Below are positions 1 to 63,557 of a stretch of DNA of 64,000 nucleotides, piece by piece. A program made the position numbers and the translations under genes. The notes under the pieces were generated by a model, which saw only the letters and a program-made list of their open reading frames with translations, did not search any database and was not told where the DNA came from. The stretch comes from Rhodosorus marinus CCMP1338 (taxonomy: Eukaryota > Plantae > Rhodophyta), in the NCBI GenBank assembly GCA_029953675.1, contig JAMWBK010000011.1, positions 744,001-808,000 of the forward strand, read 5' to 3'. Positions within the stretch are counted from its first letter, which is position 1, and every line of letters starts with the position of its first letter.

Positions 1-2
1 CA

Positions 3-371
3 GAAGGCACACTCTCGGCTAGAGATTTGCTGAATGACATCGCTACTGCATCCCAGTGGCCGAGCATAAGCGAGCTCGATGAGAAAGGTTCTCAAGGAGC
101 AAGGCAGAAAATGAAGAAAGCCCACAAGTGTCGGTTCTGTGAGAGCGAGTTCACGCAGAGCGGCCATCGGAATGAACACGAGGGCAGATTCCACTTAAAC
201 TTGGGGCACAAGTGTGATATCTGTCAGCAGACATTTGGGATGAGATCAAAGCTGCACAGACATCTTCGAAACGTTCATATTCAGGAGAAGAGGTTTGAGT
301 GCCACTGCGGAAAGCGATTTAACGAGAAGTATCACCTGAACCGGCACATGAAGATACACAAAGATACATGA
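3..371 (+). CDS. C2H2 zinc-finger protein, 3 fingers (5' end open at the window edge)
   Basis: Frame is open from base 3 (EGTLSARDLLNDIAT...). Fingers: CRFC..FTQSGHRNEHEGRFH, CDIC..FGMRSKLHRHLRNVH, CHC..FNEKYHLNRHMKIH. Paralogous to 3016 and 5102. Confidence 0.85.
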   Translation, partial: EGTLSARDLLNDIATASQWPSISELDEKGSQGARQKMKKAHKCRFCESEFTQSGHRNEHEGRFHLNLGHKCDICQQTFGMRSKLHRHLRNVHIQEKRFECHCGKRFNEKYHLNRHMKIHKDT

Positions 372-3015: not shown

Positions 3016-3501
3016 ATGGACGTATGTTGGTTAGACATTCTGATGAACTCCGAGGGAGGACCGGATCCCATTTTTGATCGGACGGAGGCTGAAGAGCTGA
3101 AGCAGCTCTTCTACTCAGTTGGTGAGGAATCTATTCCATGGCGTAGTCTGCCATGTGACAGCGGAGAAGCTTCGAAAGAGTCCGAACTGGGGTGCGCGTC
3201 GGATGGATCGGCGGCCATGAAAGGAAAGCGCAGAGGGTACTCTTGTCGGTACTGTGAGAAGGAATTCACCCAGAGTGGTCACAGAAACGAACATGAGTGC
3301 AGATTTCACCTTCATATCGGGTACAGATGTGACACTTGCGAGAAGATTTTTGGAGTAAAATCGAAGCTGGACAGACACATTCGCAATGTTCACGGTAACG
3401 CGAGAAATTACAAGTGTTGGTGCGGAAAGGATTTCAAGGAGAAGTACTATCTGTCCCGTCATTTGAAGGCTCACGACAGGAAACGGAGTCCATCCCGATG
3501 A
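3016..3501 (+). CDS. Short C2H2 zinc-finger protein (161 aa, acidic N-terminus, 3 fingers)
   Basis: ATG ORF with helices QSGHRNE, VKSKLDR, EKYYLSR, matching fingers 2-4 of the long genes. TATA-like TATATATAA at 2885. An upstream exon is not excluded (AG directly precedes the ATG). Confidence 0.85.
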   Translation: MDVCWLDILMNSEGGPDPIFDRTEAEELKQLFYSVGEESIPWRSLPCDSGEASKESELGCASDGSAAMKGKRRGYSCRYCEKEFTQSGHRNEHECRFHLHIGYRCDTCEKIFGVKSKLDRHIRNVHGNARNYKCWCGKDFKEKYYLSRHLKAHDRKRSPSR

Positions 3502-5101: not shown

Positions 5102-5635
5102 ATGTGGGGTATTGAGAACGAATCTATGAGTTGGATTATGTATGAAGGAGATGATGGGCTGTTGAGGGATACCTGCATAGATCGAGGTGGAACGAGCCTG
5201 GAATCGATGAGAGATTGGCTCTGGTTAGATTCGGCTCGAGTGTTTGAGAGCGCGGACGAGTCGAGGGGGTCCGCACAAGCCCCGTTATCAGCTGGGTCAT
5301 CCTCCGGCCCTGGCCCGACGTCGTCCGGGTCAGCCTCAACAGAAGCCCCAATGCGTAGGAAAAAAAAGTTTCCGTGTCGGTATTGTGATAAGGAATTCAC
5401 CCAAAGTGGGCACAGAAATGAGCACGAATGCAGGTTTCACCTGAAGGTCGGCTACTGGTGTCCGACATGTGATGGAATTTTTGGGGCAAAATCCAAGCTG
5501 GACAGGCACGTTCGGAGTGTTCACAGTACGGCGAGAAACCACAAGTGTGAGTGTGGCAAAGACTTCAAGGACAAATGCAGTTTGACGCGGCATATGAAGG
5601 TCCACAGGCAGGGAGGTGATGGCGATCAGTCTTAG
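5102..5635 (+). CDS. Short C2H2 zinc-finger protein (~177 aa, acidic/Trp-rich N-terminus, 3 fingers)
   Basis: First ATG of the ORF is at 5102 (alternative 5126). Helices QSGHRNE, AKSKLDR, DKCSLTR. Close paralog of 3016. Confidence 0.85.
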   Translation: MWGIENESMSWIMYEGDDGLLRDTCIDRGGTSLESMRDWLWLDSARVFESADESRGSAQAPLSAGSSSGPGPTSSGSASTEAPMRRKKKFPCRYCDKEFTQSGHRNEHECRFHLKVGYWCPTCDGIFGAKSKLDRHVRSVHSTARNHKCECGKDFKDKCSLTRHMKVHRQGGDGDQS

Positions 5636-10332: not shown

Positions 10333-11469
10333 ATGGATGCTAGCGTTGACGTTGGGACGATCTTGTCAGATATCGCTACTTGGGAGGACATGGATGAGGG
10401 TCTGGACCTTGGTTTTTTTCAAAGCTTGGAGGCTCTAGGTGCTGCTGCGTTCGATGGGAACACGCGAAACGATGGAAGTAAGTTCCTTCACGGGTGTCCG
10501 GAAGAGAAGGCCGCGTGGTTGCGTTTCGAGGGTAACGGTCTGGGTAGTGACATCAACCCCGACTCCTGCTACCAGAGAGTGGTCGATTTGAAGAGGGATG
10601 TGTCCGTTAACAATGGGATCGCGGATGAGTTTTTTAAGCCGACTCTACTCAACGTTAAGAGACAGCCGGACATGACTATTAAGGGAGACGGCTGGATCCT
10701 TCACGGAGAAACCCCTATGAGGAACACCTGTGAACCGAACAGTGTCGAAACTTTGAGGTTTATTGAATTCTACGACGGCTCCGCCCCCTCTGTTGTTTTT
10801 TCAAAGAGAAGGGGGGCGGAGTTTGTTCTCATGAAGATGAGGATCGCAGACGATCACCACGCCGTGGTTCACACTGGAGTGATGAAGGCTGGATCGAACA
10901 CGGTGGATCAAGTTGCTGAGATGAAATTGAGGAGGGAGAGGTGCCCAACGATTCCTGGACTCACCTACGAGAATTGTCGATCATTCCATGGGGAAGAAAG
11001 CGAGCCTGCGGTTTGGTTCACTCTGCTGAAGATCGGAGGGCTCACCGGAACTTGGATTGTCGAGGACGAACTCAGGACGGGGTCCATCACGTGGGGACAG
11101 GATTCGGATAGACTGACGAGAGTGCACAGCTTCGAGTTTATCCAGAGGTGCTTAGGAATGGCTGGAATCAAGCCCAGGGTTCTGGAGTCACAATTTGCGG
11201 CTGCACCTCAGGGTTACTCTGCGGCCTCGGTGAGCAACGTGAGCGAGGAGTTCCCTTCCTCCGGTAGAGATATCAACGGGAAACAGTGCCCGCAGTGCCG
11301 CAAATGCTTTTCGGTGAAGTCGAAGGTGGTGCGACATATCAACACCGTCCACAAGAACATCAGACTTCACAAGTGTCATATGTGCGACAAGAGGTTCAAG
11401 GAGAAGGGACATCTGCAGAAGCACTTGAGATCCCACGTGAGGAAACAGCTCGTGAATGGACATATTTGA
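10333..11469 (+). CDS. Divergent N-domain plus 2-finger C2H2 protein (378 aa)
   Basis: ATG ORF with two C-terminal fingers (VKSKVVR, EKGHLQK = fingers 3-4). Distant matches to the family N-domain: GDGWILHGETP ~ GSGWAFxGGLP, LRFIEF ~ FRFMTF, LTGTWIV ~ LSGTWT, GIKPR ~ GVHPPR. Confidence 0.9.
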   Translation: MDASVDVGTILSDIATWEDMDEGLDLGFFQSLEALGAAAFDGNTRNDGSKFLHGCPEEKAAWLRFEGNGLGSDINPDSCYQRVVDLKRDVSVNNGIADEFFKPTLLNVKRQPDMTIKGDGWILHGETPMRNTCEPNSVETLRFIEFYDGSAPSVVFSKRRGAEFVLMKMRIADDHHAVVHTGVMKAGSNTVDQVAEMKLRRERCPTIPGLTYENCRSFHGEESEPAVWFTLLKIGGLTGTWIVEDELRTGSITWGQDSDRLTRVHSFEFIQRCLGMAGIKPRVLESQFAAAPQGYSAASVSNVSEEFPSSGRDINGKQCPQCRKCFSVKSKVVRHINTVHKNIRLHKCHMCDKRFKEKGHLQKHLRSHVRKQLVNGHI

Positions 11470-18725: not shown

Positions 18726-20102
18726 ATGGACTTGGTGGGACAGCATGTATCTATTTTGTCACCCCTCCTGGAGTGGGATTCGACGCAACTCAGCTGGCTT
18801 TTGTTTCATTCGCAGAAACAGAGCTTGCCTAGCCCCGGAGACTGTTCCGTCGTGCTGCTAGACATGAAATGGAGCATACCAGAGGCAACACGCGTGGCAC
18901 TTGATGCTTCCGAGGTCGGTCAGTTGATATCAATCTTCTCCGAGCCATCTTTGATGATGACGGAGTTGAGGGAGGAGACCTTTTCTCTGGGATCGTGTTG
19001 GGCATTTAGAGGTGGCCTTCCTGAGCACAAGGGTAGGGTGAATCGAGATTTTCAGGGATTTGAGCGTGTGAGATTCTTGAGCTACAGTGAAGACTCGAGA
19101 GCTGTTTCTATCTTATCAGCGGAGGTCGGTCCTGGGCTGTTGGCGTTTTCCAAGGTTGTAGAGGAGGATGGGAGGCACACTTCTTCGCTTATGGGACTCC
19201 TTGATACTGCCACGGAGACTATCACGCACTGTGCAGCCGCACAAAATCGTCATAGCTGCGATACATGCCGAGTTCAAAACGTTCCGTGCGATCCTCTGAA
19301 GTGCCATAACGAGCAGGACTTTGAGCTAGCACTCGATTACAGGAGGCAGATTCTGGAGCAATCAGAAAGCCCGAGAAGCATCTCGATGCAGTATATTATT
19401 CTTTGGCTTTCTGGTACATGGACCTGTCCCATGGAGCCCTTAGAGCCCATGACGTACAGCGCAACATGTCACCTCAACGGTTCAACCTTCGACAGCGCGT
19501 TGCTGTCGGTGCTTCAAGATGAAATATCCGGTTCCCACCCTCCGCGGGCCTCGTTCCGCATTGTCAGCGAAGGACGGAAGGAAATGGATCACTTTCTGGG
19601 TTTAGAACTGGATGAATTTGAATTCAGTTCCAGCGAGGAATGGTCACCAACTCTTACTCCCACCGCAGATTTCCTTTCACAACCGAGCGGAAAGGACCAC
19701 GGCGTTAAGAAAACAGAAAGGATCTGCCAGATCTGCAACGCAAGCTTCAGAAGGAGCTATGACCTCAAAAGACATACGGCGGCTATTCACGAGAAACGAA
19801 GGGATTTTATCTGCCCAAAGTGCCCCAAGACCTACACTCAAAAGGGCCACCTCAACGAGCATATCCGGATGGTCCACTGTGAGGAACCCGGACTTCAATG
19901 CCCAGTGTGTAAAAAGCAATTTGGGATCAAATCCAAGCTGGAACGCCACATCTCAACCGTACATGAGAACATGAGAAGCTTTAAGTGCTTGGAATGCTCA
20001 AAATCATACAAGGAAAGGTCGTACCTGAAGCAACATCTTCTTACCCAGCACAACATTCGAATGGAGGGGCCCACGAGCCCGAGACCGAAGGACTCACCCT
20101 GA
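18726..20102 (+). CDS. N-domain + Cys4 + 4xC2H2 zinc-finger protein (family member 1)
   Basis: 458-aa ATG ORF with LEWDS, GGLPE, CDTC-x6-C-x4-C, HPPRASFR and four C-x2-C...H-x4-H fingers. Confidence 0.95.
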   Translation: MDLVGQHVSILSPLLEWDSTQLSWLLFHSQKQSLPSPGDCSVVLLDMKWSIPEATRVALDASEVGQLISIFSEPSLMMTELREETFSLGSCWAFRGGLPEHKGRVNRDFQGFERVRFLSYSEDSRAVSILSAEVGPGLLAFSKVVEEDGRHTSSLMGLLDTATETITHCAAAQNRHSCDTCRVQNVPCDPLKCHNEQDFELALDYRRQILEQSESPRSISMQYIILWLSGTWTCPMEPLEPMTYSATCHLNGSTFDSALLSVLQDEISGSHPPRASFRIVSEGRKEMDHFLGLELDEFEFSSSEEWSPTLTPTADFLSQPSGKDHGVKKTERICQICNASFRRSYDLKRHTAAIHEKRRDFICPKCPKTYTQKGHLNEHIRMVHCEEPGLQCPVCKKQFGIKSKLERHISTVHENMRSFKCLECSKSYKERSYLKQHLLTQHNIRMEGPTSPRPKDSP

Positions 20103-21241: not shown

Positions 21242-22564
21242 ATGGAATATAGTGGTCGGCATGTATCGATCCTGTCCCATCATTTGGAATGGGATTCGCT
21301 GCCCTTCAACTGGCTGCTGTTCAGGTTTCAGCGCCAGAGCGTCCCTGTGGGTGGCGACTGGTCGCTGCTCTTCTGGCGGCTGAAGTATGACCATCCTGCG
21401 GGGATACGGAAGGCGATGCAGGCGTCTGAGTTCAGTCGGATGGTGTCGGTGTTTTCGCAGCCGTCGCTGATGATGATCGAGCACAGGGACAGGGACTTTG
21501 CGCTCGGTTCGTACTGGGGTTTCGTTGGGGGACTACCCGAGATGAACGGCCTTGCAAATACTGATTTTGGTGGGTTTAAGAGGGTTCGTTTCTTAACATA
21601 CTGTGAAGACTCTCGAGCTGTTATTATCTACATGACTGAAGTGGCACCTGGGGTTATTGCTTTCTCGAAGATCATCGAAGCTGATGCCCGGCATGTTTCC
21701 AACGTGACTGGACTGATCGATGCAGACAGTGAGGCGATTACAATGTGCGTTACGGGGTGGAAGAGAAGGAGCTGTGACCAGTGCGCTCTCGCGAGTATCC
21801 CCTGTGATCCTGCCGTTTGCAACAACGAGAAGGACTTTGATGCAGACCGCGCTGAAAGAAAGGCATTGCTCCTAAGATCAGGTGGCTTGACGTTGGAGTA
21901 TCACAGGATGTGGTGGAATGGAAGTTGGACTGCTCCAACAGGACCTATGGGTCCGATGACAGCGTTCGCATCTTGCACTTTGAAGGGGCCGGGGTTCGAC
22001 GTGGCTTTGCTTTCCGTAATGCAACATGAAGTATCGAACGTTCATCCTCCTCGCTCCTCATACCGTATTGTAAATGAGGGAATCAACGCGATGAACTACT
22101 TCCTATCGCTGGAGGACACAGAGGTTGAAGCGAGCGAAAAACTAGCTTCAAGCATCGACCTTTTGGAGGACCCTATTTCCTTGGATTGGCTATCACTTCT
22201 GGACGATAAGACCTGTGAGATTTGCGGGTCAACGTTCACGAGGGTAATCGATGTGAGAAGACATAAGGAGAATATGCATGGGAAGAAGAGAAAGTATGAG
22301 TGCTGGATTTGTCCAAAGTCGTACTCCCAGAACGGTCACCTTCGCGAGCACGTCCGACAGGCACATGTTGCTCAGGACGCGTTCTCGTGTACACTATGTA
22401 GTAAGAGATTCGGAGTCAAACACAAGCTGCAAAGGCACTTCACTACAGTTCATGAAAACAGGCGGCGCTTCGAGTGCGAAGTATGCTCGAAGAAATACAA
22501 GGAGAAGTCGTCGCTTAAACATCACCAGCTGGTCCACCACGTTCATCTATTCGAGGAATCATGA
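21242..22564 (+). CDS. N-domain + Cys4 + 4xC2H2 zinc-finger protein (member 2)
   Basis: ATG at 21242 (MEYSGRHVS) aligns with paralog starts. All family motifs and four fingers are present. Confidence 0.95.
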   Translation: MEYSGRHVSILSHHLEWDSLPFNWLLFRFQRQSVPVGGDWSLLFWRLKYDHPAGIRKAMQASEFSRMVSVFSQPSLMMIEHRDRDFALGSYWGFVGGLPEMNGLANTDFGGFKRVRFLTYCEDSRAVIIYMTEVAPGVIAFSKIIEADARHVSNVTGLIDADSEAITMCVTGWKRRSCDQCALASIPCDPAVCNNEKDFDADRAERKALLLRSGGLTLEYHRMWWNGSWTAPTGPMGPMTAFASCTLKGPGFDVALLSVMQHEVSNVHPPRSSYRIVNEGINAMNYFLSLEDTEVEASEKLASSIDLLEDPISLDWLSLLDDKTCEICGSTFTRVIDVRRHKENMHGKKRKYECWICPKSYSQNGHLREHVRQAHVAQDAFSCTLCSKRFGVKHKLQRHFTTVHENRRRFECEVCSKKYKEKSSLKHHQLVHHVHLFEES

Positions 22565-24166: not shown

Positions 24167-25501
24167 ATGGACATCATCGGAGAGAATGTATTAAGCTTAT
24201 CACCTTTTCTACAATGGGATTCTACTCCATTCAACTGGCTTCTGTTCCGCTTGCAGAAGCAGACTGTCCCCGTTCCGGGTGAAGGCTCGGTTCTGCTATG
24301 GGACTCGAAGTGGTATGTACCGGAGGCGGCGAAGGTGGCCATGGAGGAGTCGCAGATTGGTCATCTGATCTCGAGGTTTGGTGAACCCTCGCTGATGATG
24401 CTAGAGCTTCGGCAGGAGGACTTCCTGCTGGGCTCCTACTGGTCATTTATTGGCGGTTTGCCTGAGGTGAACGGGCGAGCGAACGGCAACTTTGCAGGGT
24501 ATAACAGGGTCAGGTTTTTGACATACATGGCAGACCCTGGAATGGTTGTGGTATTCACTACTGAAGTGACACCCGGCGTTATTGCCTTCTCCAAAATCGA
24601 GGAGCTGGATGCTCGGCATGCGGCCCACACAGTTGGACTGATTGATACGACGACAGAGAACGTCATTCTGCGCATTAGGACGACTAGCAGAAGGAGCTGC
24701 GACGAGTGTGCGTCTTTGAATCGAGCATGTGATCCATCGACTTGTCAGAACGATCAGGACTTTGAGATGTCGAGAGCGGTAAGGCAGCTGCTCATTTCGC
24801 AACCTTCAAGCAACTACTCCCAATCGGCTCTAGACTATCAGCAGCTCTTTACAGATGGAGCATGGACGGGACCCCTGGGCAGTCCTGACCCGATGGTAAC
24901 CGTCGCCAGATGCTATTCGAAAGGTGCATTGTTTGATGTGGCTCTGCTTTCCGTAGTTCAAAACGAGATATCTGGAGTCCACCCTCCCCGCTCGTCTTTT
25001 CGTATTGTGAGTGAAGAATGGAATCAAATGGAGTACTATCAGGCCTTGGAGGACGTCTCCCGTAGCCCATTGGAAGAATCTTCACATAGTGAGGTGCGGT
25101 GTGCAAAGCCAAGCCCGCGCTCCTCTGGTACAGCAAAGCAAAGCAGAACATGTGAGATCTGTATGACCACCTTCCGCAGAAACTACGATCTGAAGAGGCA
25201 CTGGGCAGCGGTTCACGAGAACAGGAGGGACTTTGAATGTCTAATATGTGGCAAAACGTATACGCAAAAAGGGCATCTTAGAGAACACATCCGATCCGTG
25301 CACACGGATGATACAGCGTTCCAGTGCCGGATATGTAAAAAGCGATTTGGGGTTCAGTCGAAGCTGGAACGTCATGTCACCACCGTACACGACAGCAACC
25401 GGGGCTTCCAATGTAATCTATGCTCGAGAAGCTACAAGGAAAAATCATCCTTGAGCAAACACTTGCTGAAGCACCACAAGATTCGGAAGGGGAAAGACTG
25501 A
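24167..25501 (+). CDS. N-domain + Cys4 + 4xC2H2 zinc-finger protein (member 3)
   Basis: ATG at 24167 (MDIIGENVLS) aligns with MDLVGQHVS of member 1. The frame is open to 23840 but that extension has no paralog counterpart. Confidence 0.93.
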   Translation: MDIIGENVLSLSPFLQWDSTPFNWLLFRLQKQTVPVPGEGSVLLWDSKWYVPEAAKVAMEESQIGHLISRFGEPSLMMLELRQEDFLLGSYWSFIGGLPEVNGRANGNFAGYNRVRFLTYMADPGMVVVFTTEVTPGVIAFSKIEELDARHAAHTVGLIDTTTENVILRIRTTSRRSCDECASLNRACDPSTCQNDQDFEMSRAVRQLLISQPSSNYSQSALDYQQLFTDGAWTGPLGSPDPMVTVARCYSKGALFDVALLSVVQNEISGVHPPRSSFRIVSEEWNQMEYYQALEDVSRSPLEESSHSEVRCAKPSPRSSGTAKQSRTCEICMTTFRRNYDLKRHWAAVHENRRDFECLICGKTYTQKGHLREHIRSVHTDDTAFQCRICKKRFGVQSKLERHVTTVHDSNRGFQCNLCSRSYKEKSSLSKHLLKHHKIRKGKD

Positions 25502-41556: not shown

Positions 41557-43029
41557 ATGGACTATGTAGGAAGTCCTGCGTCGAGAATATGTCGTTACTT
41601 GGTGTGGAACTCAGTTCCGATGAACTGGATTCTTTTCAATCTGCACAAGCTGTCTGTTCCGGAGTCGGTGGATTGGAAGACCCTGCTGATGGACTCCCGG
41701 GTGGTTGTTCCCGAAGCGACGCTTCAGGTTTTGCAGGAAAATGAAATGAGCAAGATGTTGGCAGCTTTGCAGCAACCGTTCCTGTTAACGACCCAGTTCG
41801 GCAATGAGTCTTACTCGCTTGGCTCTGGATGGGCATTCATGGGTGGACTCCCGGAGGTGGACGGGGAAGTAAACCCTGGGTTCACAGGTTTGAAGAGGAT
41901 CAGGTTCCTAATGTACATGGAGGGTTCTGATGTAATCGAGCTGTTGAGTACTGAGGTAGTCCCTGGAATCGTGGCTTTTGTGAAGTCCACGGATGTGAAC
42001 GAGAGGGTAACCCTGTCGACTTGGGGGATACTGGACAAAGCGACGGAGACAATCATAGGGACGCAGCCTTCTGGCAACCTCAGAGTCTGCGAAATGTGCG
42101 AACTGTTGAACATACCGTGTAGCCCATCGACTTGTAAGAACGAAGAGGTATTCAAGGAGAAATTTGTTAGTCGGAATCAGCTAAAGGCCCGATGGGATTT
42201 CGAGAAACTGACAATGGAGTACGGCTATCAGTGGATGGTAGGAACATGGAAGGTTCCAATGGGAGATCTCGAGCCCATAACACTGAAGCAACAGTGCCAC
42301 AGTCGCGGTGCTTTGTTTGATAAGGCACTGGAGTGCGTGACCCAGGACGAAGTTCTAAGGGTTCTTCCGCCGAGGGCCTCATTTCGAGCTGTTAAGTATG
42401 AGAAGGACGTTGCTAGCTATTTTCTGGACCTGGAGAACGAGTATGGGATGTTAGGCGAAGAGTCATTCGCGGACGGTGGTCTCGAGCTCATCGGTACAAG
42501 CAGCCTTTTTGATGACGCTCTGGATCCTGCAGCGGGATATGAGGGAGCACATATTGTGGGGATTAGCTCGCAGTTTTCGGGGGAAAAAGGATTTCCGAGG
42601 GATGCTGACGAGTTGGCGGAGCGCGTGAGAATTCTAGACCGCAGATCAAGTGGCAGCGAGTCGAAAACTGCTTCGTGCGATATATGTGGGAAGCAGTTCA
42701 TGAGAGATTTTGAAGTTAAGAGACACAAAGTGACGGTTCATCAAAAGCGGCGGGACTTTGCCTGTGCAGAGTGCGGAAGAAACTTTACACAGATTGGACA
42801 CTTGAACGAACATGTAAGAGTTCATCACAGCGGGAAGAACCTGCACGTCTGCAAAGTCTGTGGGAAGAAGTTTGGCGTGAAGTCGAAGTTGAGACGACAC
42901 GAATCAGCGGTCCACGAGAATCGCCGTACTTTCCCATGCAGAATTTGTAACCAATCGTACAAAGACAAGTCGTATCTGAGACAGCACTGGATGAGTCAGC
43001 ATCCAAGGGAAAGGTGGCAAAACACTTGA
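41557..43029 (+). CDS. N-domain + Cys4 + 4xC2H2 zinc-finger protein (member 8)
   Basis: 490-aa ATG ORF with all motifs, a longer acidic linker and four fingers. Confidence 0.95.
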   Translation: MDYVGSPASRICRYLVWNSVPMNWILFNLHKLSVPESVDWKTLLMDSRVVVPEATLQVLQENEMSKMLAALQQPFLLTTQFGNESYSLGSGWAFMGGLPEVDGEVNPGFTGLKRIRFLMYMEGSDVIELLSTEVVPGIVAFVKSTDVNERVTLSTWGILDKATETIIGTQPSGNLRVCEMCELLNIPCSPSTCKNEEVFKEKFVSRNQLKARWDFEKLTMEYGYQWMVGTWKVPMGDLEPITLKQQCHSRGALFDKALECVTQDEVLRVLPPRASFRAVKYEKDVASYFLDLENEYGMLGEESFADGGLELIGTSSLFDDALDPAAGYEGAHIVGISSQFSGEKGFPRDADELAERVRILDRRSSGSESKTASCDICGKQFMRDFEVKRHKVTVHQKRRDFACAECGRNFTQIGHLNEHVRVHHSGKNLHVCKVCGKKFGVKSKLRRHESAVHENRRTFPCRICNQSYKDKSYLRQHWMSQHPRERWQNT

Positions 43030-44707: not shown

Positions 44708-46174
44708 ATGGTGGAAAGTGGGAGTCCGTTTTCTAGTCTATGCGAGTACTTGGAGGACAACCCCGTTGCGACGAGTTGGACTCTGTTTGGGATGAACAAA
44801 CTCGCGATGCCGGATGCTGGAGAATGGCAAACGCTTCTGATTGACAACCGCACTTTCATTCCTGAGGCCACCCGTCAGGTTCTTGAACGCTCGGAAATCT
44901 GCAACTTGATGTACACTCTAAAGGAGCCTTGGCTATTGATGACCCAATTTGGCAATCGGGACTACTCGCTGGGATCTGGATGGGCGTTTATTGGAGGGTT
45001 ACCTGAGAAGGACGGTGTTGTAAATAAAGACTTCAAACGGCTCGAGAGAATCCACTGGCTAAGCTTCAGGGAAGGTTCGAAGATGACCACGCTTCTATTG
45101 AACGAAGTCGAACCAGGAATTCTAGCATTTGCCAAATCTCAGGAGCTGAACGAGAGGCAGAACCGGACAATATGGGGTATAGTGGACCAGAACACGCAGA
45201 GGATCTTGTCGTCGAACGTGTCCGATGATCATAAGACGTGTGATGCATGCCACTTGCTGGGCATCGCCTGTGAACCTCTAACCTGCCCTAACCAAGGTAT
45301 GTTTCTAGCTCAGTGGAATCGGAGAATGGAGATGCATGCCAATTGGGATTTTGAATTGCTAGCTATGGAGTACGGAGAGGGTTGGTTGAACGGGACGTGG
45401 AAGGTTCCAGTGGGGAATCTCGAGCCGGTGACAGTATTCAACTCTTGCCACAGACGTGGGTCGGTTTTTGATTCGGCGCTGCTTTGCGTTCTTCAAGAGG
45501 AAGCGCTCACTGTTCACCCGCCAAGGTCCACATTCCGAGTGGCTAAGTACGAACAGAAAGTTGTTGACAATTTTCTGGGTCTAGAGGGACACAACTTTTG
45601 GAACCGAGAGACCGCGGTACATGGTGGTGAACTCGTCCTGGGCGACAGCAGCTTGGATGACTCTACGCCATCTTCGGCTCAGGACGGCACGGAATCCTGC
45701 CAGTCGTGGATTAGAAGCGAGGGCTTGGCAAACAATGGTGGCGCCGTGGCGAAGGGGAACCACAGAGTTGGAAGCGAGGATGCTGATTCGAAGGCGTCGA
45801 GAAAGTTTCAGTGCGACGTGTGTGGAATGATGTTTAAGAGGAGTTATGAAACTAAGAGGCACCGAGCGACTGTTCACCAGAAACGCCGGGACTACACGTG
45901 CGCTGAATGTGGGAAGAATTTCACTCAGAACGGACATCTGAACGAGCATGTAAAGGTTTATCACATCGGGAAGAACGTGCCCACATGTAAGCTTTGCGGG
46001 AAAAAGTTTGGGAACAAGTCGAAGCTGAACCGACATGTGGCCACGGTTCATGAGAATAGCCGTACCTTCCAGTGCAACGTTTGCAGAGGGATGTACAAGG
46101 AGAAATCCTATCTCAAGCAGCACGTAATAAGCCAACATGGAGTTGAAAGCTGGAAAGAGGCGGTTGGGAGCTAG
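44708..46174 (+). CDS. N-domain + Cys4 + 4xC2H2 zinc-finger protein (member 9)
   Basis: ATG at 44708 (MVESGSPFSSL). All motifs and four fingers present. Confidence 0.95.
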   Translation: MVESGSPFSSLCEYLEDNPVATSWTLFGMNKLAMPDAGEWQTLLIDNRTFIPEATRQVLERSEICNLMYTLKEPWLLMTQFGNRDYSLGSGWAFIGGLPEKDGVVNKDFKRLERIHWLSFREGSKMTTLLLNEVEPGILAFAKSQELNERQNRTIWGIVDQNTQRILSSNVSDDHKTCDACHLLGIACEPLTCPNQGMFLAQWNRRMEMHANWDFELLAMEYGEGWLNGTWKVPVGNLEPVTVFNSCHRRGSVFDSALLCVLQEEALTVHPPRSTFRVAKYEQKVVDNFLGLEGHNFWNRETAVHGGELVLGDSSLDDSTPSSAQDGTESCQSWIRSEGLANNGGAVAKGNHRVGSEDADSKASRKFQCDVCGMMFKRSYETKRHRATVHQKRRDYTCAECGKNFTQNGHLNEHVKVYHIGKNVPTCKLCGKKFGNKSKLNRHVATVHENSRTFQCNVCRGMYKEKSYLKQHVISQHGVESWKEAVGS

Positions 46175-47528: not shown

Positions 47529-48863
47529 ATGGCTGCCATTGGAAGGCACTTTTCGAGTTTGTGCCCTGGTCTGGGGACGGGCTCGATTCCGATAGACTGG
47601 GCGCTTTACAAGATACACAAGTTGGTGGTTCCGGAGCCAGGTCAGTGGCGGATGATGCTTATGGACCTCCGGATGAACGTGCCTGATATCACTCGTGCGG
47701 TCCTGGAATCTTCAGAGTTGCTCAGCGTCCTCTCTGCGCTTCAGCAGCCGGTGCTTCTGATGACTCAGTATGGGAATGAGGATTACGCGCTCGGATCTGG
47801 ATGGGCGTTCGTACGGGGACTACCTGAGGTAAACGGATCACCGAACAGGAAGTTTGCAGGCCTCCAGAGAATCCGATTCACCAGCTACGTCAAGGATTCC
47901 AAGTTGACGACGATTCTCGCAATCCATATTTCGTCGGATATTGTTGCGTTTTCGAAGAGCGAAGAGTTGAATGGAAGGGCAAACCGCACCACTTGGGGCC
48001 TCGTCGACAAACGGACCGAGTTAATTCTGCAACTAAATACCGGGGACGACGACTACAGGCAGTGTGACATGTGCGGACTGGCTGGTACACATTGCGACCC
48101 GAGCACCTGCCTCCACGTTCAAAAATTTGAGGACCTCAGGCTGGAAAGGAACCGGATGAGGGAGAAATCGAGTATGGAAACGATAATAATGGATTATATG
48201 ATGAGCTGGTTGAACGGCGTGTGGAAGATTCCTGTGGGGGATTTCGAGCCGGTGACGCTGATCCACAGGCCGCACCGAAATGGGATGGTGTTCGACACCT
48301 GCGTACTATTTGTCCTGCAGGATGAAATAGTTGGTGTCCACCCGCCGAGGTCTTCGTTCCGAGCAATCCAATCTCAGAGGGCAGCTGCCCATGGGGTTTT
48401 TAGCTCGGAGGAAGGTGGCGCAGGGCCGCCGAGAGGAGAAGCTCCTACTTCGGACGATACGAATTCGGTAGAACAGAGCACTTCGCCAGCAGCAGGTTCC
48501 CCTGTGCCCAGAAATGTTTGTCGGGTATGTGGGATGGTCTTTAAGCGGCATTATGAAACGTCTAGGCATGTGGAAACTGTTCACCGGAAACGAAGGAACT
48601 ATTCGTGCCCGCAATGTGGAAGAAATTTCCTTCAGAATGGACACCTGCACGAGCACATCAGGCTCAGGCACAGCGCGGAGAAGCCGTATCAGTGCAAAAT
48701 TTGCAAAAGGGGTTTTGGTGGCAAGGCAAAGGTGGACCGACACATGGCTACAGTACATGAGAATCGGCGAAATTTCAAGTGCAGCAAGTGCAGCGGGTCG
48801 TACAAGGAGAAGTCGTACTTGAAGCGGCATATGATGAATCAGCACGGGATTGAGTTTACGTAA
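47529..48863 (+). CDS. N-domain + Cys4 + 4xC2H2 zinc-finger protein (member 10)
   Basis: ATG at 47529 (MAAIGRHFSSL). All motifs and four fingers; the only member with a near-canonical linker (HSAEKPY). Confidence 0.95.
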   Translation: MAAIGRHFSSLCPGLGTGSIPIDWALYKIHKLVVPEPGQWRMMLMDLRMNVPDITRAVLESSELLSVLSALQQPVLLMTQYGNEDYALGSGWAFVRGLPEVNGSPNRKFAGLQRIRFTSYVKDSKLTTILAIHISSDIVAFSKSEELNGRANRTTWGLVDKRTELILQLNTGDDDYRQCDMCGLAGTHCDPSTCLHVQKFEDLRLERNRMREKSSMETIIMDYMMSWLNGVWKIPVGDFEPVTLIHRPHRNGMVFDTCVLFVLQDEIVGVHPPRSSFRAIQSQRAAAHGVFSSEEGGAGPPRGEAPTSDDTNSVEQSTSPAAGSPVPRNVCRVCGMVFKRHYETSRHVETVHRKRRNYSCPQCGRNFLQNGHLHEHIRLRHSAEKPYQCKICKRGFGGKAKVDRHMATVHENRRNFKCSKCSGSYKEKSYLKRHMMNQHGIEFT

Positions 48864-51614: not shown

Positions 51615-52991
51615 ATGGATTTGGTTGCAACAGAGAGTTTGGGTCGGTCCGTTTGCACGCTATCGTCTGTGTTTGAGTGGAACTCGATTCCTTTGAATTG
51701 GATGATGTTCAAGAGCGATAAACAGGCTGTTCCACACGCTGGAGACTGGACGATTATGTTGATGGATACGATTTTTAAAATTCCAGAGGCAACTGGTAGG
51801 GCACTGCAAAAGTCTGAGGTGGCTAGGATGATATCTGTGTTGAACCAACCGTCGCTGATGATGACGGAGGTTCACGAAAGGAACTATTCGCTAGGGTCTG
51901 GGTGGGCGTTCGTAGGTGGTTTACCGCAGTTGGGCCTAAGACTGAACTCAAAGTTTCAAGGACTGCAACGCGTTCGGTTTGTTACGTTCTTCGAGAACTA
52001 CAAAGCTGTTGTGGTCTTGTCCAGCGAAGTACGACCTGGGGTGATTGCCTTTATTAGACTCGCCGAGGTGAATGGGAGATACAACTACAGTATATGGGGA
52101 CTAGCAGAAAAAGATAGCGGAACGATAGTGGCGAGTCAGGACCACCTCGATAGACGAAACTGTGATATGTGCAATCTGATGGACATAGCGTGCGATCCTC
52201 GGAGCTGCAAGAACGAACAGTCGTTTGATGACCTGCGAGCGTCGAGAGAAGCAATTTTGGATCGGATGGAGTACCCCATGTACACGATGGAATACACCAA
52301 GGCGTGGCTTCCTGGCAAGTGGACAGTACCTGTGGGACCGTTGGAGCCAGTGACCTTCAGAACGTCAGGGTACATTTCTGGAGCTAGTTTTGAGTTGGCT
52401 TTGCTATCAGTGCGTCAAGATGAGTCAATGAGGGTACATCCTCCGCGAGGTACCTTCAGATTCGTCAAGCTTGGGATGAACGAAATGGACTACTTCCTGA
52501 ACCTGGAGGGGACGTCCACGGCGGAGACGGCTCTGTCAAATGGAACTCCTCAGATATCCTATGAAAAGCAAACTGACGAGGTTAGTGTTTTGGACTCTGT
52601 CGAGGAGGAGACTAAAGAGTTACCTCGGACGAAGGGGAGCACGAAAGTGTGTGAATTATGCGGTATGAGCTTCAGAAGAGTCCATGATCTCAAAAGACAT
52701 GGCGTGGCGATTCACGGGAAGAAGAAGGATTACACGTGCAGATATTGCCAGCAGACTTTTACTCAGAACGGACACCTTAATGAGCACATCCGAGTAACGC
52801 ACAGTGGCAGGAATGTTTTTAAGTGCGATATCTGCCAAAGCGTATTTGGAGCCAGGTCCAAATTGCAGCGTCACATCACAACGGTTCACGAGAATCGTCG
52901 AAATTTCGAGTGCGGAATTTGTCGTGGGAAGTACAAAGAAAAATCGTACTTGAAACAGCACATGCAGGCTGTTCACGGCGAGGAAATGTGA
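51615..52991 (+). CDS. N-domain + Cys4 + 4xC2H2 zinc-finger protein (member 11)
   Basis: ATG at 51615 in AACCATGG context (MDLVATESLG), 458 aa. Recent duplicate of 59418. Confidence 0.95.
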   Translation: MDLVATESLGRSVCTLSSVFEWNSIPLNWMMFKSDKQAVPHAGDWTIMLMDTIFKIPEATGRALQKSEVARMISVLNQPSLMMTEVHERNYSLGSGWAFVGGLPQLGLRLNSKFQGLQRVRFVTFFENYKAVVVLSSEVRPGVIAFIRLAEVNGRYNYSIWGLAEKDSGTIVASQDHLDRRNCDMCNLMDIACDPRSCKNEQSFDDLRASREAILDRMEYPMYTMEYTKAWLPGKWTVPVGPLEPVTFRTSGYISGASFELALLSVRQDESMRVHPPRGTFRFVKLGMNEMDYFLNLEGTSTAETALSNGTPQISYEKQTDEVSVLDSVEEETKELPRTKGSTKVCELCGMSFRRVHDLKRHGVAIHGKKKDYTCRYCQQTFTQNGHLNEHIRVTHSGRNVFKCDICQSVFGARSKLQRHITTVHENRRNFECGICRGKYKEKSYLKQHMQAVHGEEM

Positions 52992-55445: not shown

Positions 55446-55494
55446 TCCAGGTATCTGAAGATTGCGGGTTAGAGTCCCGTCGCGGTTGTCTTGT

Positions 55495-57870: not shown

Positions 57871-58011
57871 TGGCGCCCTATACGACTGAGGTTCTAGTCC
57901 TCAGGCTAGTCGCTAGTTGCCGGCCGCGGGAGAGCGCTGTGGAATTGCCGCTGCCAGTGTGAGGCGTCGCAAAGAGTGGAAATATGTTGGGGGGTGGGGG
58001 CTTTCTTTGTC

Positions 58012-58278: not shown

Positions 58279-59417
58279 CCACCGTAGGGAGAAAAAAAAG
58301 TAGTAGTTTCTAGTTGTTTTTTGGATATTATGAGTAGGGTGGTGCCAAGTGGATCCGGTTTTTCCCTGTTTAAGACTCACATCCCTCCTTAAACCCTCCT
58401 GTTTTCGCGGGTTTAACCACTTCTGGGTCGTAAACAGAGAAAAACCCTGACCCACTTGGCACAACCCAACTATTATGAGGAGGAGAACATTACTCGGGGT
58501 TGCTTCATGGTTTCTGCTTTTTGTTTTCATTTTTCTTCAATTAAGAATTTTGCTGGAAAAAAAAGCTTTCTTTTTTTTTTCCTGTCGCGCGCAGGTCCCC
58601 TTCCTCCTTGCGTTTTTTGAAAGCTTTTTATGGGTCCATGTCCTTTTCACGGTGAGCAGCTGCAGAGGGAACATTGGAAGAAATAGGTCGTGCTTGTGGC
58701 CCCAAAGTGGGATATTGTTTAGACGATATAATTTTTCGGGCCTCCTCGGCATGCCTTTCGAGTGACGGGCTCCTCACGCAATACGACTTTTTCTCTTTGC
58801 ATTTTGTAATGGGAAGGTTTGTTCGAAGATTTTTTCAGTGCAAGACGAGATTTTGATTTTTCTCGTTGCCAGAAAGGGGGGGGGGAGTTTTGCTGAGGAG
58901 AGAAGGGTTGATTGTACATTTGGGAGGTGGTAGGACCCCTCCTGGTAAGGATGAGGAGACGAGGGTTGGCATAATCGATATAGTGTTCGGGTGGGTAGTG
59001 GGCAGTGGGCGGTGGGTGGAATGTTTTGTTGTTGTGTCCGGTTTGGGGAGGTTTTGTTCGGGTATTCTCTTTGTTGAGCGGATGAGCTGCCGCTCTTAGC
59101 TTTTGAGTTGGAGGACTGTTTCAAGGTTGAGAGAGACACGGGATTTGATATTTGATGTATGTTGGGGCGGGTAATGGGGGGTAGGAGGAGGTGGAGCTCG
59201 TCTACTTTGAAGATTTCTTGTGGTGCTCAGCGCTTAATGGAGATCTGACGGCAGTTGGTCACGCGAATGGTTGTGGGAGGGTTCTGGCTGAGCTTTTGCT
59301 TTTGGATTGTTCTGGTTGTTTCGAGGTTTTAGGGGTTCTTGAAAGCGAGTTTGGAAGATAATTGCGCTCGAGCGGGGCCCGGATGTTGTGGAAAGAGGTC
59401 CTTGGTCTTTTGAAACC

Positions 59418-60797
59418 ATGGATTTGGTTGGAACGGAGACTCTGGGTCCGTCCGTTTGCACGCTATCGTCTTTGTTTGAATGGGATTCGATTCCTTTGAA
59501 TTGGATGATGTTCAAGAGCGATAAACAGGCTGTTCCACACGCTGGAGACTGGACGATTATGTTGATGGATACGATTTTTAAAATTCCAGAGGCAACTGGT
59601 ATGGCCTTGCAAAAGTCTGAGGTGGCCAGGATGATATCAGTGTTGAACCAGCCTTCGCTGATGATGACGGAGGTTCACGAAAGGAACTATTCGCTAGGGT
59701 CTGGGTGGGCGTTCGTAGGTGGTTTACCGCAACTGGGCCTAAAACTGAACTCAATGTTTCAAGGACTGCAACGCGTTCGGTTTGTTACGTTCTTCGAGAA
59801 CTACAAAGCTGTTGTGGTCTTGGCCAGCGAAGTACGACCTGGGGTGATTGCCTTTATTAGACTCGCCGAGGTGAATGGGAGATACAACTACAGTATATGG
59901 GGACTAGCAGAAAAAGATAGCGGAACGATAGTGGCGAGTCAGGACCACCTCGATAGACGAAACTGTGACATGTGCAATCTGATGGACATAGCGTGCGAAC
60001 CTCGGAGCTGCAAGAACGAACAGTCGTTTGATGACCTGCGAGCGTCGAGAGAAGCAATTTTGGATCGGATGGAGTACCCCATGTACACGATGGAATACAC
60101 CAAGGCGTGGCTTCCTGGAAAGTGGACAGTGCCCGTGGGACCGTTGGAGCCAGTGACCTTCAGAACGCCAGGGTACATTTCTGGAGCTAGTTTTGAGTTG
60201 GCTTTGCTATCAGTGCGTCAAGATGAGTCAATGAGGGTGCATCCTCCACGAGGTACCTTCAGATTCGTCAAGCTTGGGATGAACGAAATGGAGTGCTTCC
60301 TGAACCTGGAGGGGACGTCTACGGCGGAGACGGCTCTGTCAAATGGAACTTCTCAGATATCCTATGAAAAGCAAACTGACGAGGTTAGCGTTTTGGAGTC
60401 TGTCCAGGAGGAGACTAAAGAGTTACCTCGGACGAAAGGGAGCACGAACGTATGTGAACTATGCGGTATGAGCTTCAGAAGCGTTCACGATCTCAGAAGT
60501 CATGGCGCGGCAATTCACGGGAAGAAGAAAACTCATTCATGCAGATACTGCCCGAAGACGTTTACCCAGAACGGACACCTTAATGAACATATCCGAGTAA
60601 GGCACAGTGGGAGGAACATTTTCATGTGTGATATCTGCCAGAGGGTGTTTGGAGCAAAATCCAAGCTGCAACGTCACATCACAACGGTTCACGAGAAACG
60701 ACGAAATTTCGCTTGCGAATTCTGTTATGGGACGTTCAAGGAAAAATCGTACTTGAAACAGCACGTGCAAAAGGTTCATGGAGAGAAAGCAACGTGA
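59418..60797 (+). CDS. N-domain + Cys4 + 4xC2H2 zinc-finger protein (member 12)
   Basis: ATG at 59418 in AACCATGG context (MDLVGTETLG), 459 aa. Recent duplicate of 51615. Confidence 0.95.
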   Translation: MDLVGTETLGPSVCTLSSLFEWDSIPLNWMMFKSDKQAVPHAGDWTIMLMDTIFKIPEATGMALQKSEVARMISVLNQPSLMMTEVHERNYSLGSGWAFVGGLPQLGLKLNSMFQGLQRVRFVTFFENYKAVVVLASEVRPGVIAFIRLAEVNGRYNYSIWGLAEKDSGTIVASQDHLDRRNCDMCNLMDIACEPRSCKNEQSFDDLRASREAILDRMEYPMYTMEYTKAWLPGKWTVPVGPLEPVTFRTPGYISGASFELALLSVRQDESMRVHPPRGTFRFVKLGMNEMECFLNLEGTSTAETALSNGTSQISYEKQTDEVSVLESVQEETKELPRTKGSTNVCELCGMSFRSVHDLRSHGAAIHGKKKTHSCRYCPKTFTQNGHLNEHIRVRHSGRNIFMCDICQRVFGAKSKLQRHITTVHEKRRNFACEFCYGTFKEKSYLKQHVQKVHGEKAT

Positions 60798-62186
60798 GGA
60801 ATTCCTGCCCTGACATCCTGTTTACACCAATAACGCCGTGCAGCGCTTCCCTCCCGATGTAATTAATTATCCCACGCTCCTGACTACAAAGCTTTCCGCG
60901 TGGGACGGCGGGCGGTCGCTGGGTTCTCACCCTCCAGAATTCACACTGGCGTGCTCGGATGGGGTGATGGCTTCGCCACCATGTCTTGCCATTCCTTTCA
61001 GTCTCGAACAAGACGTGAGGCCTCAGCTAGCTCTCGAACCCCCACCTAGTTTCCCAACCCTGAACATTTACTTTATATAATTAATCATGAACTGTATACC
61101 TTGATTTTGTTTCTCATTGGATTCGATTGGTTATCAAATCCGAGCTGACGTTTCCTGTCCTTAGTCCGGATTCATCTATCCCGAAATCGCCCCGCAAATT
61201 CTCCCCCTCCCCCCCTACACCGTTGGAGTGAGAATCTATACGTCTGTTTTTTATTATTAACGGGAGCAATGTGGAAAGTAATATTTTTTCCTACGGGGAT
61301 GGTTGCTGGATGATATTCGGTCTTGCTTAATTTGTTTGTGTGCCCGGGATGGAAGTTGGTTTTTTGGATATATTATGGAGGATTATTTTGGATATAATGA
61401 CTAGATTTGGTTGAGTTGGTGCCTACTTTTCTCTGATTTGTGGTTGTCAGGTGATGGTGTTAGTGTGAGTTCGGTCGAATGGCTTTTGGGGGGGAGAGGG
61501 GGTTGGATCCTCTATAGTCCGTCTTAACCCCAGTTACTGAACGTAGAAGAGTCACAGAACTCTTTTGATTCCCATCTCCTCAATCTCCCACCAATTCCGC
61601 CCCCCTCCAACCCAGTATTGTACGGTTCCCAGTTCGTACCAGGAGCTAAGAGCCAGCCACTACCAAACTGAACTTCTTTTTTTCGGGTGCTTGAGGTTGT
61701 GTGAAGTGGAAGGTAAATCATCGTTTTGAGGTTTTTGAGGTCTTCGGCCGGGGTTTCGATGAAGTTCGCTACCAATTGGGTGATCTGCGGTCGATTTTGG
61801 ATTGGGTGGATTGGCGTTGGATTTGGATTTTGAGTGGGGTAGCTGAAGTTGAAGTACTGAAAGAGGGAATTGGGTCGTCCTGAGGTTTGCACGTCTTCGA
61901 CAGGGTCAGAGCGGGGTTTCCATGGCCGCCCTGGACTTTTTTTTTTGTTTGTCTTGGGGATTACCTAGGTCTTTTGGCTGAGAGGAGGGCATGACGTCCG
62001 GTCGATGAACTCGCGTACGTGCTCTGCTGGAGTGGCGGGGATTGACGGAGGTCTCCGTCTTTGTCTGGTTTCTGGTTTTTAGTATCAGGAGAGAGGTTCG
62101 AAGAGCGCTGCCCTGACGTTTTGAGCGATCAGACGTTCCAGTAGAGGATTTCCCAGGAGATCTACTAAGCGCGGTTCTTCTGGAGA

Positions 62187-63557
62187 ATGGAGTCACTTGG
62201 AACTCAGTTTTCCAGCCTGTCTCCTCATTTGGAATGGGACTCGATACCTATGAACTGGTCGCTTTTCAGGTTGCATAGGCAGGCCGTACCGTATCCCGGA
62301 GATTGGTCAGTGATGCTCATTGATATGCGGTTTAAGATACCCGAGTTGACGGAGTCTGTTATTAACGCATCCGTTAGCGCTCGAATGATCTCGTTGTTCA
62401 CCCAGCCATCGCTGATGATGACTGAGGTGCATTGCGACTCTTACATTCTCGGATCCGGATGGACTTTTCTTGGAGGTCTTCCGGACCTGGACGGGCTATC
62501 GAACGGCAGGCACGCTGGTATGCAAAGGATTCGCTTTTTGTCATGGCTTGAGAACAACAAGGCGAGGGCGCTTCTATCCAGTGAGGTTCGCCCAGGACTA
62601 ATCGTCTTCGCGAAGATCTCGGAACTGGATGGCAGATACAACCAAACTACGTGGGGCCTTGTGGGCCAGGATGATGAGACAGTCCTTCACACTCATGTGC
62701 ATCTAGAGAGGCGGACATGCGATGTGTGCCGCACCATTGGGAAGCCCTGCGACGATAGGATTTGCAAGTTCGAACAGTCCTTCCACGAGATGAGAGATGC
62801 CAGGATATCGCTTCTTGAGCAGATGACAACACGATCTGTGAATATGCAGTATACGATGGCGTGGTTGGCTGGCTCTTTTACAATCCCGTGTGGGCCGCTG
62901 GAGCCAATGACCGTCGATACGTCGTGCTATATATCGGGGTCGAACTTTGACAGGGCACTGCTTGCAGTCTTGCAGAGTGAGGTCTCCAGCGTACACCCGC
63001 CTCGATCATCGTTCCGATTCGTGAAGCTGGTCAAGGATGAGGTGGATGGACTCCTTGACACCGAAGTATATTTTTCAGCTGCAGAAGATCAATTCCTTAC
63101 GTTTCCAGCGGATTGTGCGTCTTCCTCGGGAGAAGGTTCAGGGCACAAGCAAGTGTCCACGTCGGCGTCAGAACCATTGGAGCCCAGGTCGACGGCGAAG
63201 AAACACGTGTGCGACGATTGTGGGGCCTCGTATGGGAGAGCCTACCACCTGAAACGGCACTGGACGGTGGTACACCAGAAGAGGAGGGACTACTTGTGCT
63301 CGGCTTGTGACAGGACCTTTACACAGAGTGGGCACCTGAATGAACACGTTCGAGTGGCGCACCGTACGGAGAACCTCTTCCAGTGTTCAAGGTGCGACAA
63401 GAGTTTTGGTACCAGCTCCAAGCTCACAAGGCACACACTTACTGTTCATGAGAACCGTCGTAGATTCGAATGCGACGTATGCATGAAAAGATACAAGGAG
63501 AAGTCGTACTTAAAACAGCATTTGCGCTCTCAACATGGTGTTCAAATGGAAGCGTGA
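62187..63557 (+). CDS. N-domain + Cys4 + 4xC2H2 zinc-finger protein (member 13)
   Basis: 456-aa ATG ORF with all motifs and four fingers. Confidence 0.95.
   Translation: MESLGTQFSSLSPHLEWDSIPMNWSLFRLHRQAVPYPGDWSVMLIDMRFKIPELTESVINASVSARMISLFTQPSLMMTEVHCDSYILGSGWTFLGGLPDLDGLSNGRHAGMQRIRFLSWLENNKARALLSSEVRPGLIVFAKISELDGRYNQTTWGLVGQDDETVLHTHVHLERRTCDVCRTIGKPCDDRICKFEQSFHEMRDARISLLEQMTTRSVNMQYTMAWLAGSFTIPCGPLEPMTVDTSCYISGSNFDRALLAVLQSEVSSVHPPRSSFRFVKLVKDEVDGLLDTEVYFSAAEDQFLTFPADCASSSGEGSGHKQVSTSASEPLEPRSTAKKHVCDDCGASYGRAYHLKRHWTVVHQKRRDYLCSACDRTFTQSGHLNEHVRVAHRTENLFQCSRCDKSFGTSSKLTRHTLTVHENRRRFECDVCMKRYKEKSYLKQHLRSQHGVQMEA

Follow-up and report, generated by a model that had tools for sequence, protein, structure and literature searches.

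A tandem array of C2H2 zinc-finger genes in the red alga Rhodosorus marinus is, on balance, probably a lineage-specific expansion of transcription factors with a common DNA-reading module and a conserved regulatory domain not described before. The window analyzed is the whole 64,000-nucleotide (nt) stretch JAMWBK010000011.1:744001-808000 of assembly GCA_029953675.1, which lies on a contig of 1.44 Mb. On its + strand 17 C2H2 open reading frames (ORFs) were found, of which 13 are long, three are short, and one is degenerate. The long genes occupy 18726 to 63557, were aligned end to end, and have a common layout consisting of an N-terminal domain (N-domain) of ~290 amino acids (aa), a linker of 35-82 aa, and four fingers. 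From start to start the genes are spaced 2.5-4.4 kb apart, with a 7.8 kb gap as the single exception. All 16 complete genes in the window begin with ATG and have zero internal stops, and each gene is a single unbroken ORF colinear with transcript-derived proteins of equal length. From this, the genes are considered to be intronless. These observations agree with an earlier, sequence-only reading of the window, which had described 17 co-oriented, apparently intronless C2H2 genes, 13 of them with one architecture and mostly at this spacing. The first of the 17 is cut by the window edge.

The same reading had taken the 17 genes in the window to be the array. Its full extent was found to be larger, and the window is the 5' half of it. 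A profile built from the 13 N-domains detects 16 further N-domain genes downstream of the window, all on the + strand, up to record position ~863 kb, while at least two further short C2H2 genes lie upstream. The whole array therefore holds at least 29 long and at least six short or degenerate genes on a single strand over ~126 kb, and the profile matches 29 ORFs across it. These gene counts are lower bounds for the record covered, which spans 737043-744000 (L009) upstream and 799075-863371 (L001, L003, L002) downstream. The two most distal downstream copies are divergent and have the cysteine motif CxxCx6CxC, as in other genera. One search with a profile of the N-domains retrieved R. marinus proteins only, tagged NDN08_0072xx and all on JAMWBK010000011.1.

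The DNA-reading residues of the fingers are nearly uniform among these proteins. Membership in the C2H2 class is clear: in each of the eight proteins scanned, PF00096 reaches 34-65 bits, above its gathering threshold of 25.2, and in every one of the 13 long genes a regular expression locates four fingers, placed 29 aa apart. Contact residues were defined as helix positions -1, +2, +3, and +6, and entropies were computed over 27 array members. Finger 2 (F2) has the contacts Q-G-H-E in 17/17 window genes and in 26 of the 27 array members scored. Finger 3 (F3) has x-S-K-R, with K at +3 and R at +6 in all 27 members and S at +2 in 24 of them (two of the 13 long window genes have H or A at this position). 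Finger 1 (F1) follows R-[Y/H/F/W/I/C]-[D/E/H]-R, where S replaces R at one or both ends in two of the 13 long genes and the R at +6 is present in 26/27 array members. Finger 4 (F4) follows [E/D]-[S/A/G]-[Y/S]-x. Entropy is ~0-0.2 bits at all F2 contacts and at F3 +3 and +6, and 0.61 bits at F3 +2; at the remaining non-ligand finger positions it reaches 1.7-2.1 bits. Distant homologs of other genera also retain the F1, F2 +3, and F3 +2/+3/+6 contacts. The near invariance of contact residues reported in the sequence-only reading was thus confirmed. Because the paralogs have a near-identical DNA-reading module, it is reasonable to infer from their sequences that all of them would read a similar core DNA element.

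Net charge ranges from +9 to +18 in the fingers and from -16 to 0 in the N-domain. The linkers are acidic, contain much Ser, and have Leu, Phe, and Trp scattered along them. This distribution is consistent with fingers that bind DNA, a linker of the activation type, and an N-domain which does not bind DNA. One could also propose that the fingers bind RNA or protein, that the array is involved in chromatin or transposon control, or that it originated from a mobile element. C2H2 fingers are able to bind RNA or protein, the inter-finger linkers (e.g., HENRRxF) differ from the canonical TGEKP type, and an enriched target motif is missing nearby, all of which would suit such a role. However, the linkers have the canonical length of 7 residues, and together with the strong basic charge and the conserved -1, +3, and +6 positions they form the standard signature of DNA reading. 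Moreover, neither within nor between the genes was a transposase, integrase, or reverse-transcriptase domain or a terminal repeat found. A non-classical role or origin of this kind is accordingly judged to be very improbable. As for a transposon or viral origin specifically, it was rejected: Pfam revealed no such domains, BFVD gave no match, the similarity is confined to coding sequence, and there are no terminal repeats.

Conservation of the N-domain was found to be more extensive than the short motifs to which the sequence-only reading had reduced it. Mean pairwise identity between paralogs is 41% in the N-domain (range 30-96%), 53% in the finger region, and 18% in the linker, and 26 N-domain columns are invariant among the 13 copies. 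Since the whole finger region is only 53% identical, the contrast between the two parts of the protein concerns contact residues and not whole domains. Between paralogs, nonsynonymous and synonymous differences per site (pN/pS) are 0.40/0.76 in the N-domain, 0.31/0.84 in the fingers, and 0.63/0.74 in the linker, with the synonymous substitution rate (dS) saturated. A second comparison used orthologs of a second strain, taken from MMETSP-derived contigs. Here the ratio of the nonsynonymous rate (dN) to dS is 0.16-0.27 for the N-domain, 0.06-0.21 for the fingers, and 0.48-0.73 for the linker, while amino-acid changes per site over nine ortholog pairs amount to 0.14, 0.10, and 0.32, respectively. 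No substitution hot-spot was found in the N-domain among these nine pairs. From the between-strain dN/dS and substitution rates it follows that the fingers are the most constrained part, the N-domain is constrained slightly less, and the linker is free. The N-domain is therefore under purifying selection nearly as strong as that on the fingers, and the 35-82 aa linker is the truly unconstrained part. The proposal of fixed DNA-reading heads joined to diversified sensors was half right in this respect, as the contacts are fixed but the N-domain is conserved.

The most conserved blocks of the N-domain are common to all copies. They are LGSGWAFxGGLPE (residues 88-100), RRxCDxCx6CDPxxC (176-193), and VHPPRSSFR (269-277). 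The second block contains an invariant four-cysteine motif, CxxCx6Cx4C, at residues 178-193, which takes the form CxxCx6CxC in distant relatives and probably binds zinc. The most variable elements are the strand 165-176, the helix 199-212, the loop 213-219, and the strand 238-248. Taken together, the proteins combine LGSGW-F-GGLP, CxxCx6Cx1-4C, and (H)PPRSSFR in the N-domain with a C2H2 module behind it whose helices read QxGHLxEH and KSKLxRH, and this combination marks them as a new family.

Structure prediction with AlphaFold2 gave the same topology from two alignments, with a predicted local distance difference test score (pLDDT) of 83 and a predicted template-modelling score (pTM) of 0.81 for 13 sequences, and a pLDDT of 88 and pTM of 0.83 for 44 sequences. 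The predicted fold has 10 long antiparallel strands in meander order and several helices, and a helix-loop at 178-193 holds the 4 invariant cysteines. Searches with this domain returned little. Pfam gave no match at E <= 5 for the 13 N-domains, and in the eight full proteins scanned it matched C2H2 models only. A sequence profile search of the PDB found nothing below E 0.1 and only noise above it (aIF2-alpha at E 0.12, GAL4 at E 8.1). Foldseek found nothing below E 0.02 in the PDB (both models) or in BFVD (first model). The accessory domains of other zinc-finger families were likewise not found. KRAB had no match at E <= 0.1 in full proteins or at E <= 5 in the 13 N-domains, and neither BTB nor SCAN had a Pfam match in either set. 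ZAD (PF07776, ~75 aa) gave no Pfam match, and the Cys4 motif is at 178-193 of a 290-aa domain and not N-terminal. The nuclear-receptor models PF00105 and PF00104 had no match, and the N-domain is predicted to be beta-rich. Gal4-type Zn2Cys6 (PF00172) also had no Pfam match, and there are only 4 conserved cysteines where six are required in the pattern CX2CX6CX5-12CX2CX6-8C. By these comparisons the N-domain is a previously undescribed domain, as the sequence-only reading had suspected, and the models suggest a beta-meander or barrel-like structure with no identifiable relative.

The recurring weak Foldseek neighbors of the models were avidins, nitrophorin-type lipocalins, FABP/CRABP, NanoLuc, and de novo DFHBI binders, all of which are small up-and-down barrels. 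For these matches the template-modelling (TM) score is 0.44-0.50 when normalized to the target and ~0.2 when normalized to the query, with probability up to 0.9 and E >= 0.02. It could be hypothesized from such neighbors that the N-domain is a ligand- or partner-binding beta-barrel through which each paralog responds to its own signal at the same DNA element, with the short genes as constitutive or competing members. This is consistent with several results: the contacts do not vary and the N-domain has diverged more (41% vs 53% identity), the fold is predicted confidently as globular and beta-rich with weak neighbors that are all small-molecule-binding barrels, and the short genes retain fingers and are missing the N-domain. 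In addition, paralogs are kept as 1:1 orthologs between strains, which indicates that the copies are not merely redundant. Nevertheless, the fold matches are not significant, the low dN/dS extends over the whole N-domain with no hot-spot, the strongest conservation is in the motifs common to all copies, and in one copy gene conversion overwrote the N-domain and the copy was not lost. A repertoire of this kind, which the sequence-only reading had proposed in the manner of nuclear-receptor expansions, is thus unlikely. The more specific version, in which the N-domain would be a new small-molecule- or metal-binding beta-barrel and the array a set of one-component sensor-transcription factors gating the same DNA element by different signals, is rather unlikely, and one ligand per paralog is weakly supported.

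The taxonomic range of the family was determined with a hidden Markov model (HMM) search that was exhaustive over 1.84 billion representative proteins, using the profile from 13 copies at E <= 0.001. It returned 46 proteins, and all inspectable matches have the same architecture with the exception of P0048. This 2,038-aa repeat protein gave 32 short matches to profile positions 253-276 only and was taken as spurious. The named matches are from Rhodosorus marinus, Bangiopsis sp. CCMP1999, and Purpureofilum apyrenoidigerum, all of which are Stylonematophyceae, and the others are from 'Logan' assemblies. A word-index search with a profile of distant homologs returned 2 proteins only and did not widen this range.

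For at least eight long window genes the MMETSP/JGI transcriptomes include orthologs of 78-91% identity, and for one short gene an ortholog of 80% identity. One contig from JGI 3300017118 (L008, 5752 nt) carries the orthologs of gene 62187 and of its neighbor NDN08_007228, arranged as in the array. Synteny is therefore conserved between strains. The origin of this contig is either read-through transcription or genomic DNA that entered the transcriptome. The two 'Rhodosorus marinus' sources were found to be ~83-87% DNA-identical, including non-coding flanks (L006, L007, and L008 vs the window), with dS of 0.2-0.5. Their divergence may exceed that between strains of a single species.

Repeated-gene arrays are prone to assembly errors, and a similar picture could in principle come from duplication in the assembly or from a row of dead pseudogenes. 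Against this, all 16 complete window ORFs are ATG-initiated and free of internal stops, the copies differ by 50-70% in protein and so do not represent collapsed or duplicated reads, purifying selection acts on them, and an independent strain assembly has the same genes with the same order for two neighbors. On these grounds an artefact was rejected, and its probability is negligible.

The way in which the array grew can be read from the relationships of its genes. Identity falls with genomic distance (Spearman -0.41, with 0/2000 permutations as extreme), and the nearest relative is within 2 positions for 18 of the 29 genes. Local tandem duplication fits this pattern, since identity falls with distance and nearest relatives are adjacent. 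Between units, DNA similarity is limited to coding sequence. A mosaic was found in the genes at 51615 and 59418, whose N-domain and linker have ~97% DNA identity with a dS of 0.10, while their finger region has ~82% DNA identity with a dS of 0.71 and a dN of 0.11, and their flanks are unalignable. This points to a gene-conversion tract which runs across the N-domain and ends near the start of the fingers. Because conversion overwrote the N-domain in this pair, it can be argued that N-domains are not each an indispensable, unique specificity.

Tandem structure with adjacent nearest relatives, the presence of one conversion tract, identical DNA-reading residues, and the failure to find distinct promoter motifs would also be expected if the copies were equivalent, with no role specific to a paralog, and their number served expression level or followed passively from unequal crossing-over. 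However, most paralogs are only 30-50% identical and their dS is saturated, so homogenization must be rare. Furthermore, 1:1 orthologs at 78-91% identity evolve under purifying selection, which shows that the copies have long been kept separately. Dosage or concerted evolution as the explanation of the array is therefore quite improbable.

The favored explanation, a tandem expansion of transcription factors with one DNA-reading module and a shared regulatory domain, can be formulated as follows. Its observed basis is the anatomy of the genes, their conservation, the selection on them, their taxonomic range, and the existence of transcripts; that the fingers bind DNA, that the linker activates, and what the N-domain does are what we infer in it. 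The array grew through local tandem duplication and, now and then, gene conversion, and purifying selection keeps the copies individually. Through their fixed fingers, all members would bind a similar core DNA element. The linker, which is fast-evolving, acidic, and Ser-rich with scattered hydrophobics, has the composition of acidic activation regions and may supply activation. The N-domain would act as a shared regulatory module, most likely for a partner interaction or oligomerization common to all copies. Contact could be made via the invariant LGSGWAFxGGLPE loop and the VHPPRSSFR motif, with the Cys4 (presumed zinc) site as a stabilizing element. Paralog-specific behavior might then arise from differing promoters, from the linker, and from variable N-domain surfaces. 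The short genes would supply fingers 2-4 and an acidic N-terminus but no regulatory domain.

Several observations weigh against this explanation. The weak fold matches to ligand-binding barrels, as seen with the predicted models, leave room for a small-molecule role. For the target site, a recognition-code guess (GGNNGAGCG) occurs 10 times in the window against 7 +/- 2.5 expected, which is no enrichment. Likewise, no shared k-mer (k = 7-10) was found above a Markov-shuffled background in the 600 nt upstream of the 29 genes. Self-regulation of the array is consequently unsupported, as there is neither a common upstream motif nor an enrichment of the code-predicted site. The transcripts come from another, divergent strain with ~84% DNA identity even in the flanks, and at least one 'transcript' contig spans two adjacent genes. 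That transcriptome was flagged in a published survey as an outlier for protein number (PMC12567131). Some genomic DNA carry-over may thus be present in the transcript evidence.

The individual members of the array, all on the + strand, can be described in their genomic order. The first, at 1..371, belongs to a short C2H2 gene encoding 140 aa; its ATG is 52 nt upstream of the window, which includes the 3' part only. The gene has an acidic N-terminus and fingers of the F2, F3, and F4 types. The short gene at 3043..3501 (152 aa) also has an acidic N-terminus, 3 fingers of F2-F4 type ('QSGHRNEH'), and no N-domain, and the MMETSP transcript P0084 is 80% identical to it. A gene of the same type is found at 5126..5635 (169 aa). 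The short genes are thus missing the N-domain and retain fingers 2-4, and the domain-less genes of the sequence-only reading are real. At 10333..11469 is a degenerate family member of 378 aa, in which F3 and F4 remain along with a relic of F2. Toward residues 76-183 of the N-domain, the N-region of this protein has at most a weak and tentative similarity (hhalign E 0.0045, probability 7.7%).

Long gene 1 is located at 18726..20102 (458 aa) and consists of the N-domain, an acidic linker, and 4 C2H2 fingers. Its public model begins at 18864 and has 412 aa; the ORF and the family alignment favor 458 aa, so that 46 aa of the N-domain are lost in the model. Downstream of the window, NDN08_007234 (430 aa; L003:9740-11290) and NDN08_007236 (390 aa; L003:15599-17032) seem to be likewise shortened at the N-domain. 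The next four genes have matches among the MMETSP sequences: gene 2 at 21242..22564 (440 aa; fragment P0034, 91% identical), gene 3 at 24167..25501 (444 aa; P0030, 88%), gene 4 at 27127..28497 (456 aa; P0029, 86%), and gene 5 at 31532..32908 (458 aa; P0019, 78%), which is the most divergent copy in the window. They are followed by gene 6 at 34901..36229 (442 aa) and gene 7 at 37861..39240 (459 aa), whose ortholog P0006 gives a dN/dS of 0.23 in the N-domain and 0.10 in the fingers. Gene 8 at 41557..43029 (490 aa) and gene 9 at 44708..46174 (488 aa) both have a long linker, and the latter has the 78%-identical ortholog P0031/P0080. Gene 10 is found at 47529..48863 (444 aa). The conversion pair consists of gene 11 at 51615..52991 (458 aa), which is the positional ortholog of MMETSP P0002 by flank alignment, and gene 12 at 59418..60797 (459 aa). 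Gene 13 at 62187..63557 (456 aa) is the sequence behind both structure models.

Between the genes, scans of the window for tRNAs and Rfam families found no RNA genes, and a tandem-repeat scan found few intergenic repeats. Three of these are 63627-63945 (78 nt x 4, 91% identity), 50426-51000 (194 nt x 3), and 33805-34205 (209 nt x 1.9), and they are not common between units. Two gene-free gaps are unusually long, namely 11470-18725 (7.3 kb) and 52992-59417 (6.4 kb). No pseudogene remnants of the family were found in either gap, as judged by N-domain HMM matches, and the ORFs in them are non-coding-looking. In the first gap a stretch at 14-16 kb has a marked strand skew (AT +0.24, GC -0.18).

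The only opposite-strand genes seen inside the ~126-kb array are a DEAD/ResIII (DEAD-box) helicase gene and a 127-aa ORF, both at L003:11837-13680 (minus). Outside the array, a singleton long-type gene, NDN08_007190, is found ~73 kb upstream of the window. It is surrounded by 6 minus-strand paralogs (L004, record 660846-682198) which have a mutual identity of 22-31%, an F-box-like start 'LPxKDRLxLALCSK', and no Pfam hit on record. This group is a second tandem family on the contig.

Literature searches found no description of this array or of its N-domain. The paper in which the genome was released has mitochondrial minicircles as its topic and makes no mention of zinc finger, C2H2, transcription factor, or gene family (PMC10250338). 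What is known of red-algal transcription factors consists almost entirely of counts per family, in which C2H2 is the largest class (PMC8304369, PMC12567131). The array is a concrete, studyable example, as it represents a C2H2 family of Stylonematophyceae with a folded accessory domain absent from databases. In Rhodosorus this family has grown to at least 30 tandem copies, in which the DNA-reading residues have stayed the same. It also offers a natural experiment on how regulators diversify under a frozen DNA-binding specificity, and for structural and functional studies it supplies a new protein domain in which a Cys4 zinc site is probable. If the N-domain binds ligands, these proteins would be a new class of eukaryotic one-component regulators, with a logic like that of nuclear receptors independently invented outside animals. 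If it is a dimerization or partner module, it would be the red-algal counterpart of ZAD, SCAN, or BTB.

Among known systems, vertebrate KRAB-ZFP clusters are similar in being large same-strand tandem C2H2 clusters which arose by local duplication and encode an N-terminal accessory domain followed by fingers. In KRAB-ZFPs, however, KRAB is conserved and the finger contacts diversify under positive selection, whereas here the contacts are fixed, there are 4 fingers only, KRAB is absent, and the genes are intronless. The array does therefore show the opposite pattern to KRAB-ZFP clusters, as had been stated in the sequence-only reading. The insect ZAD-C2H2 clusters are comparable as lineage-specific tandem C2H2 genes with a conserved four-cysteine N-terminal domain, a variable linker, and C-terminal fingers, and ZAD serves as a dimerization module in these proteins. 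In contrast to the N-domain, which is ~290 aa long and predicted to be beta-rich, ZAD has ~75 aa, and no Pfam ZAD match was found here. ZAD proteins also have varied finger arrays and specificities, unlike the fixed contacts of the array.

Nuclear-receptor expansions, such as the HNF4-derived NHRs of Caenorhabditis, similarly combine a conserved DNA-binding domain with a more divergent globular domain and are lineage-specific and partly tandem. They differ from the array, which has no zf-C4 or ligand-binding-domain match, a reversed domain order, and an N-domain predicted to be beta-rich rather than an alpha-helical sandwich. Another possible parallel is THAP4, which joins a zinc-finger DNA-binding domain to a ligand-binding beta-barrel (nitrobindin). 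Small up-and-down barrels of this calycin type are the recurring weak Foldseek neighbors of the N-domain, although nitrobindin itself is absent from the top 50 matches. The N-domain is twice the size of such barrels, has extra helices and a Cys4 site, and its matches to them are not significant.

In logic, the array resembles ancient C2H2 families, SP/KLF and the plant QALGGH type among them, where fixed fingers combined with a variable N-terminus are normal. The pattern of the array is thus unusual only relative to KRAB-ZFP clusters. Sequence searches gave no relationship of the array proteins to SP/KLF or plant Q-type families. Nevertheless, the same logic applies in both, with near-identical C-terminal finger contacts, a common core motif, and differing N-terminal regulatory regions. 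In SP/KLF and Q-type proteins these N-terminal regions are for the most part unrelated effector motifs, largely disordered, and the genes are dispersed, whereas in R. marinus one homologous, folded domain accompanies the fingers in one array.

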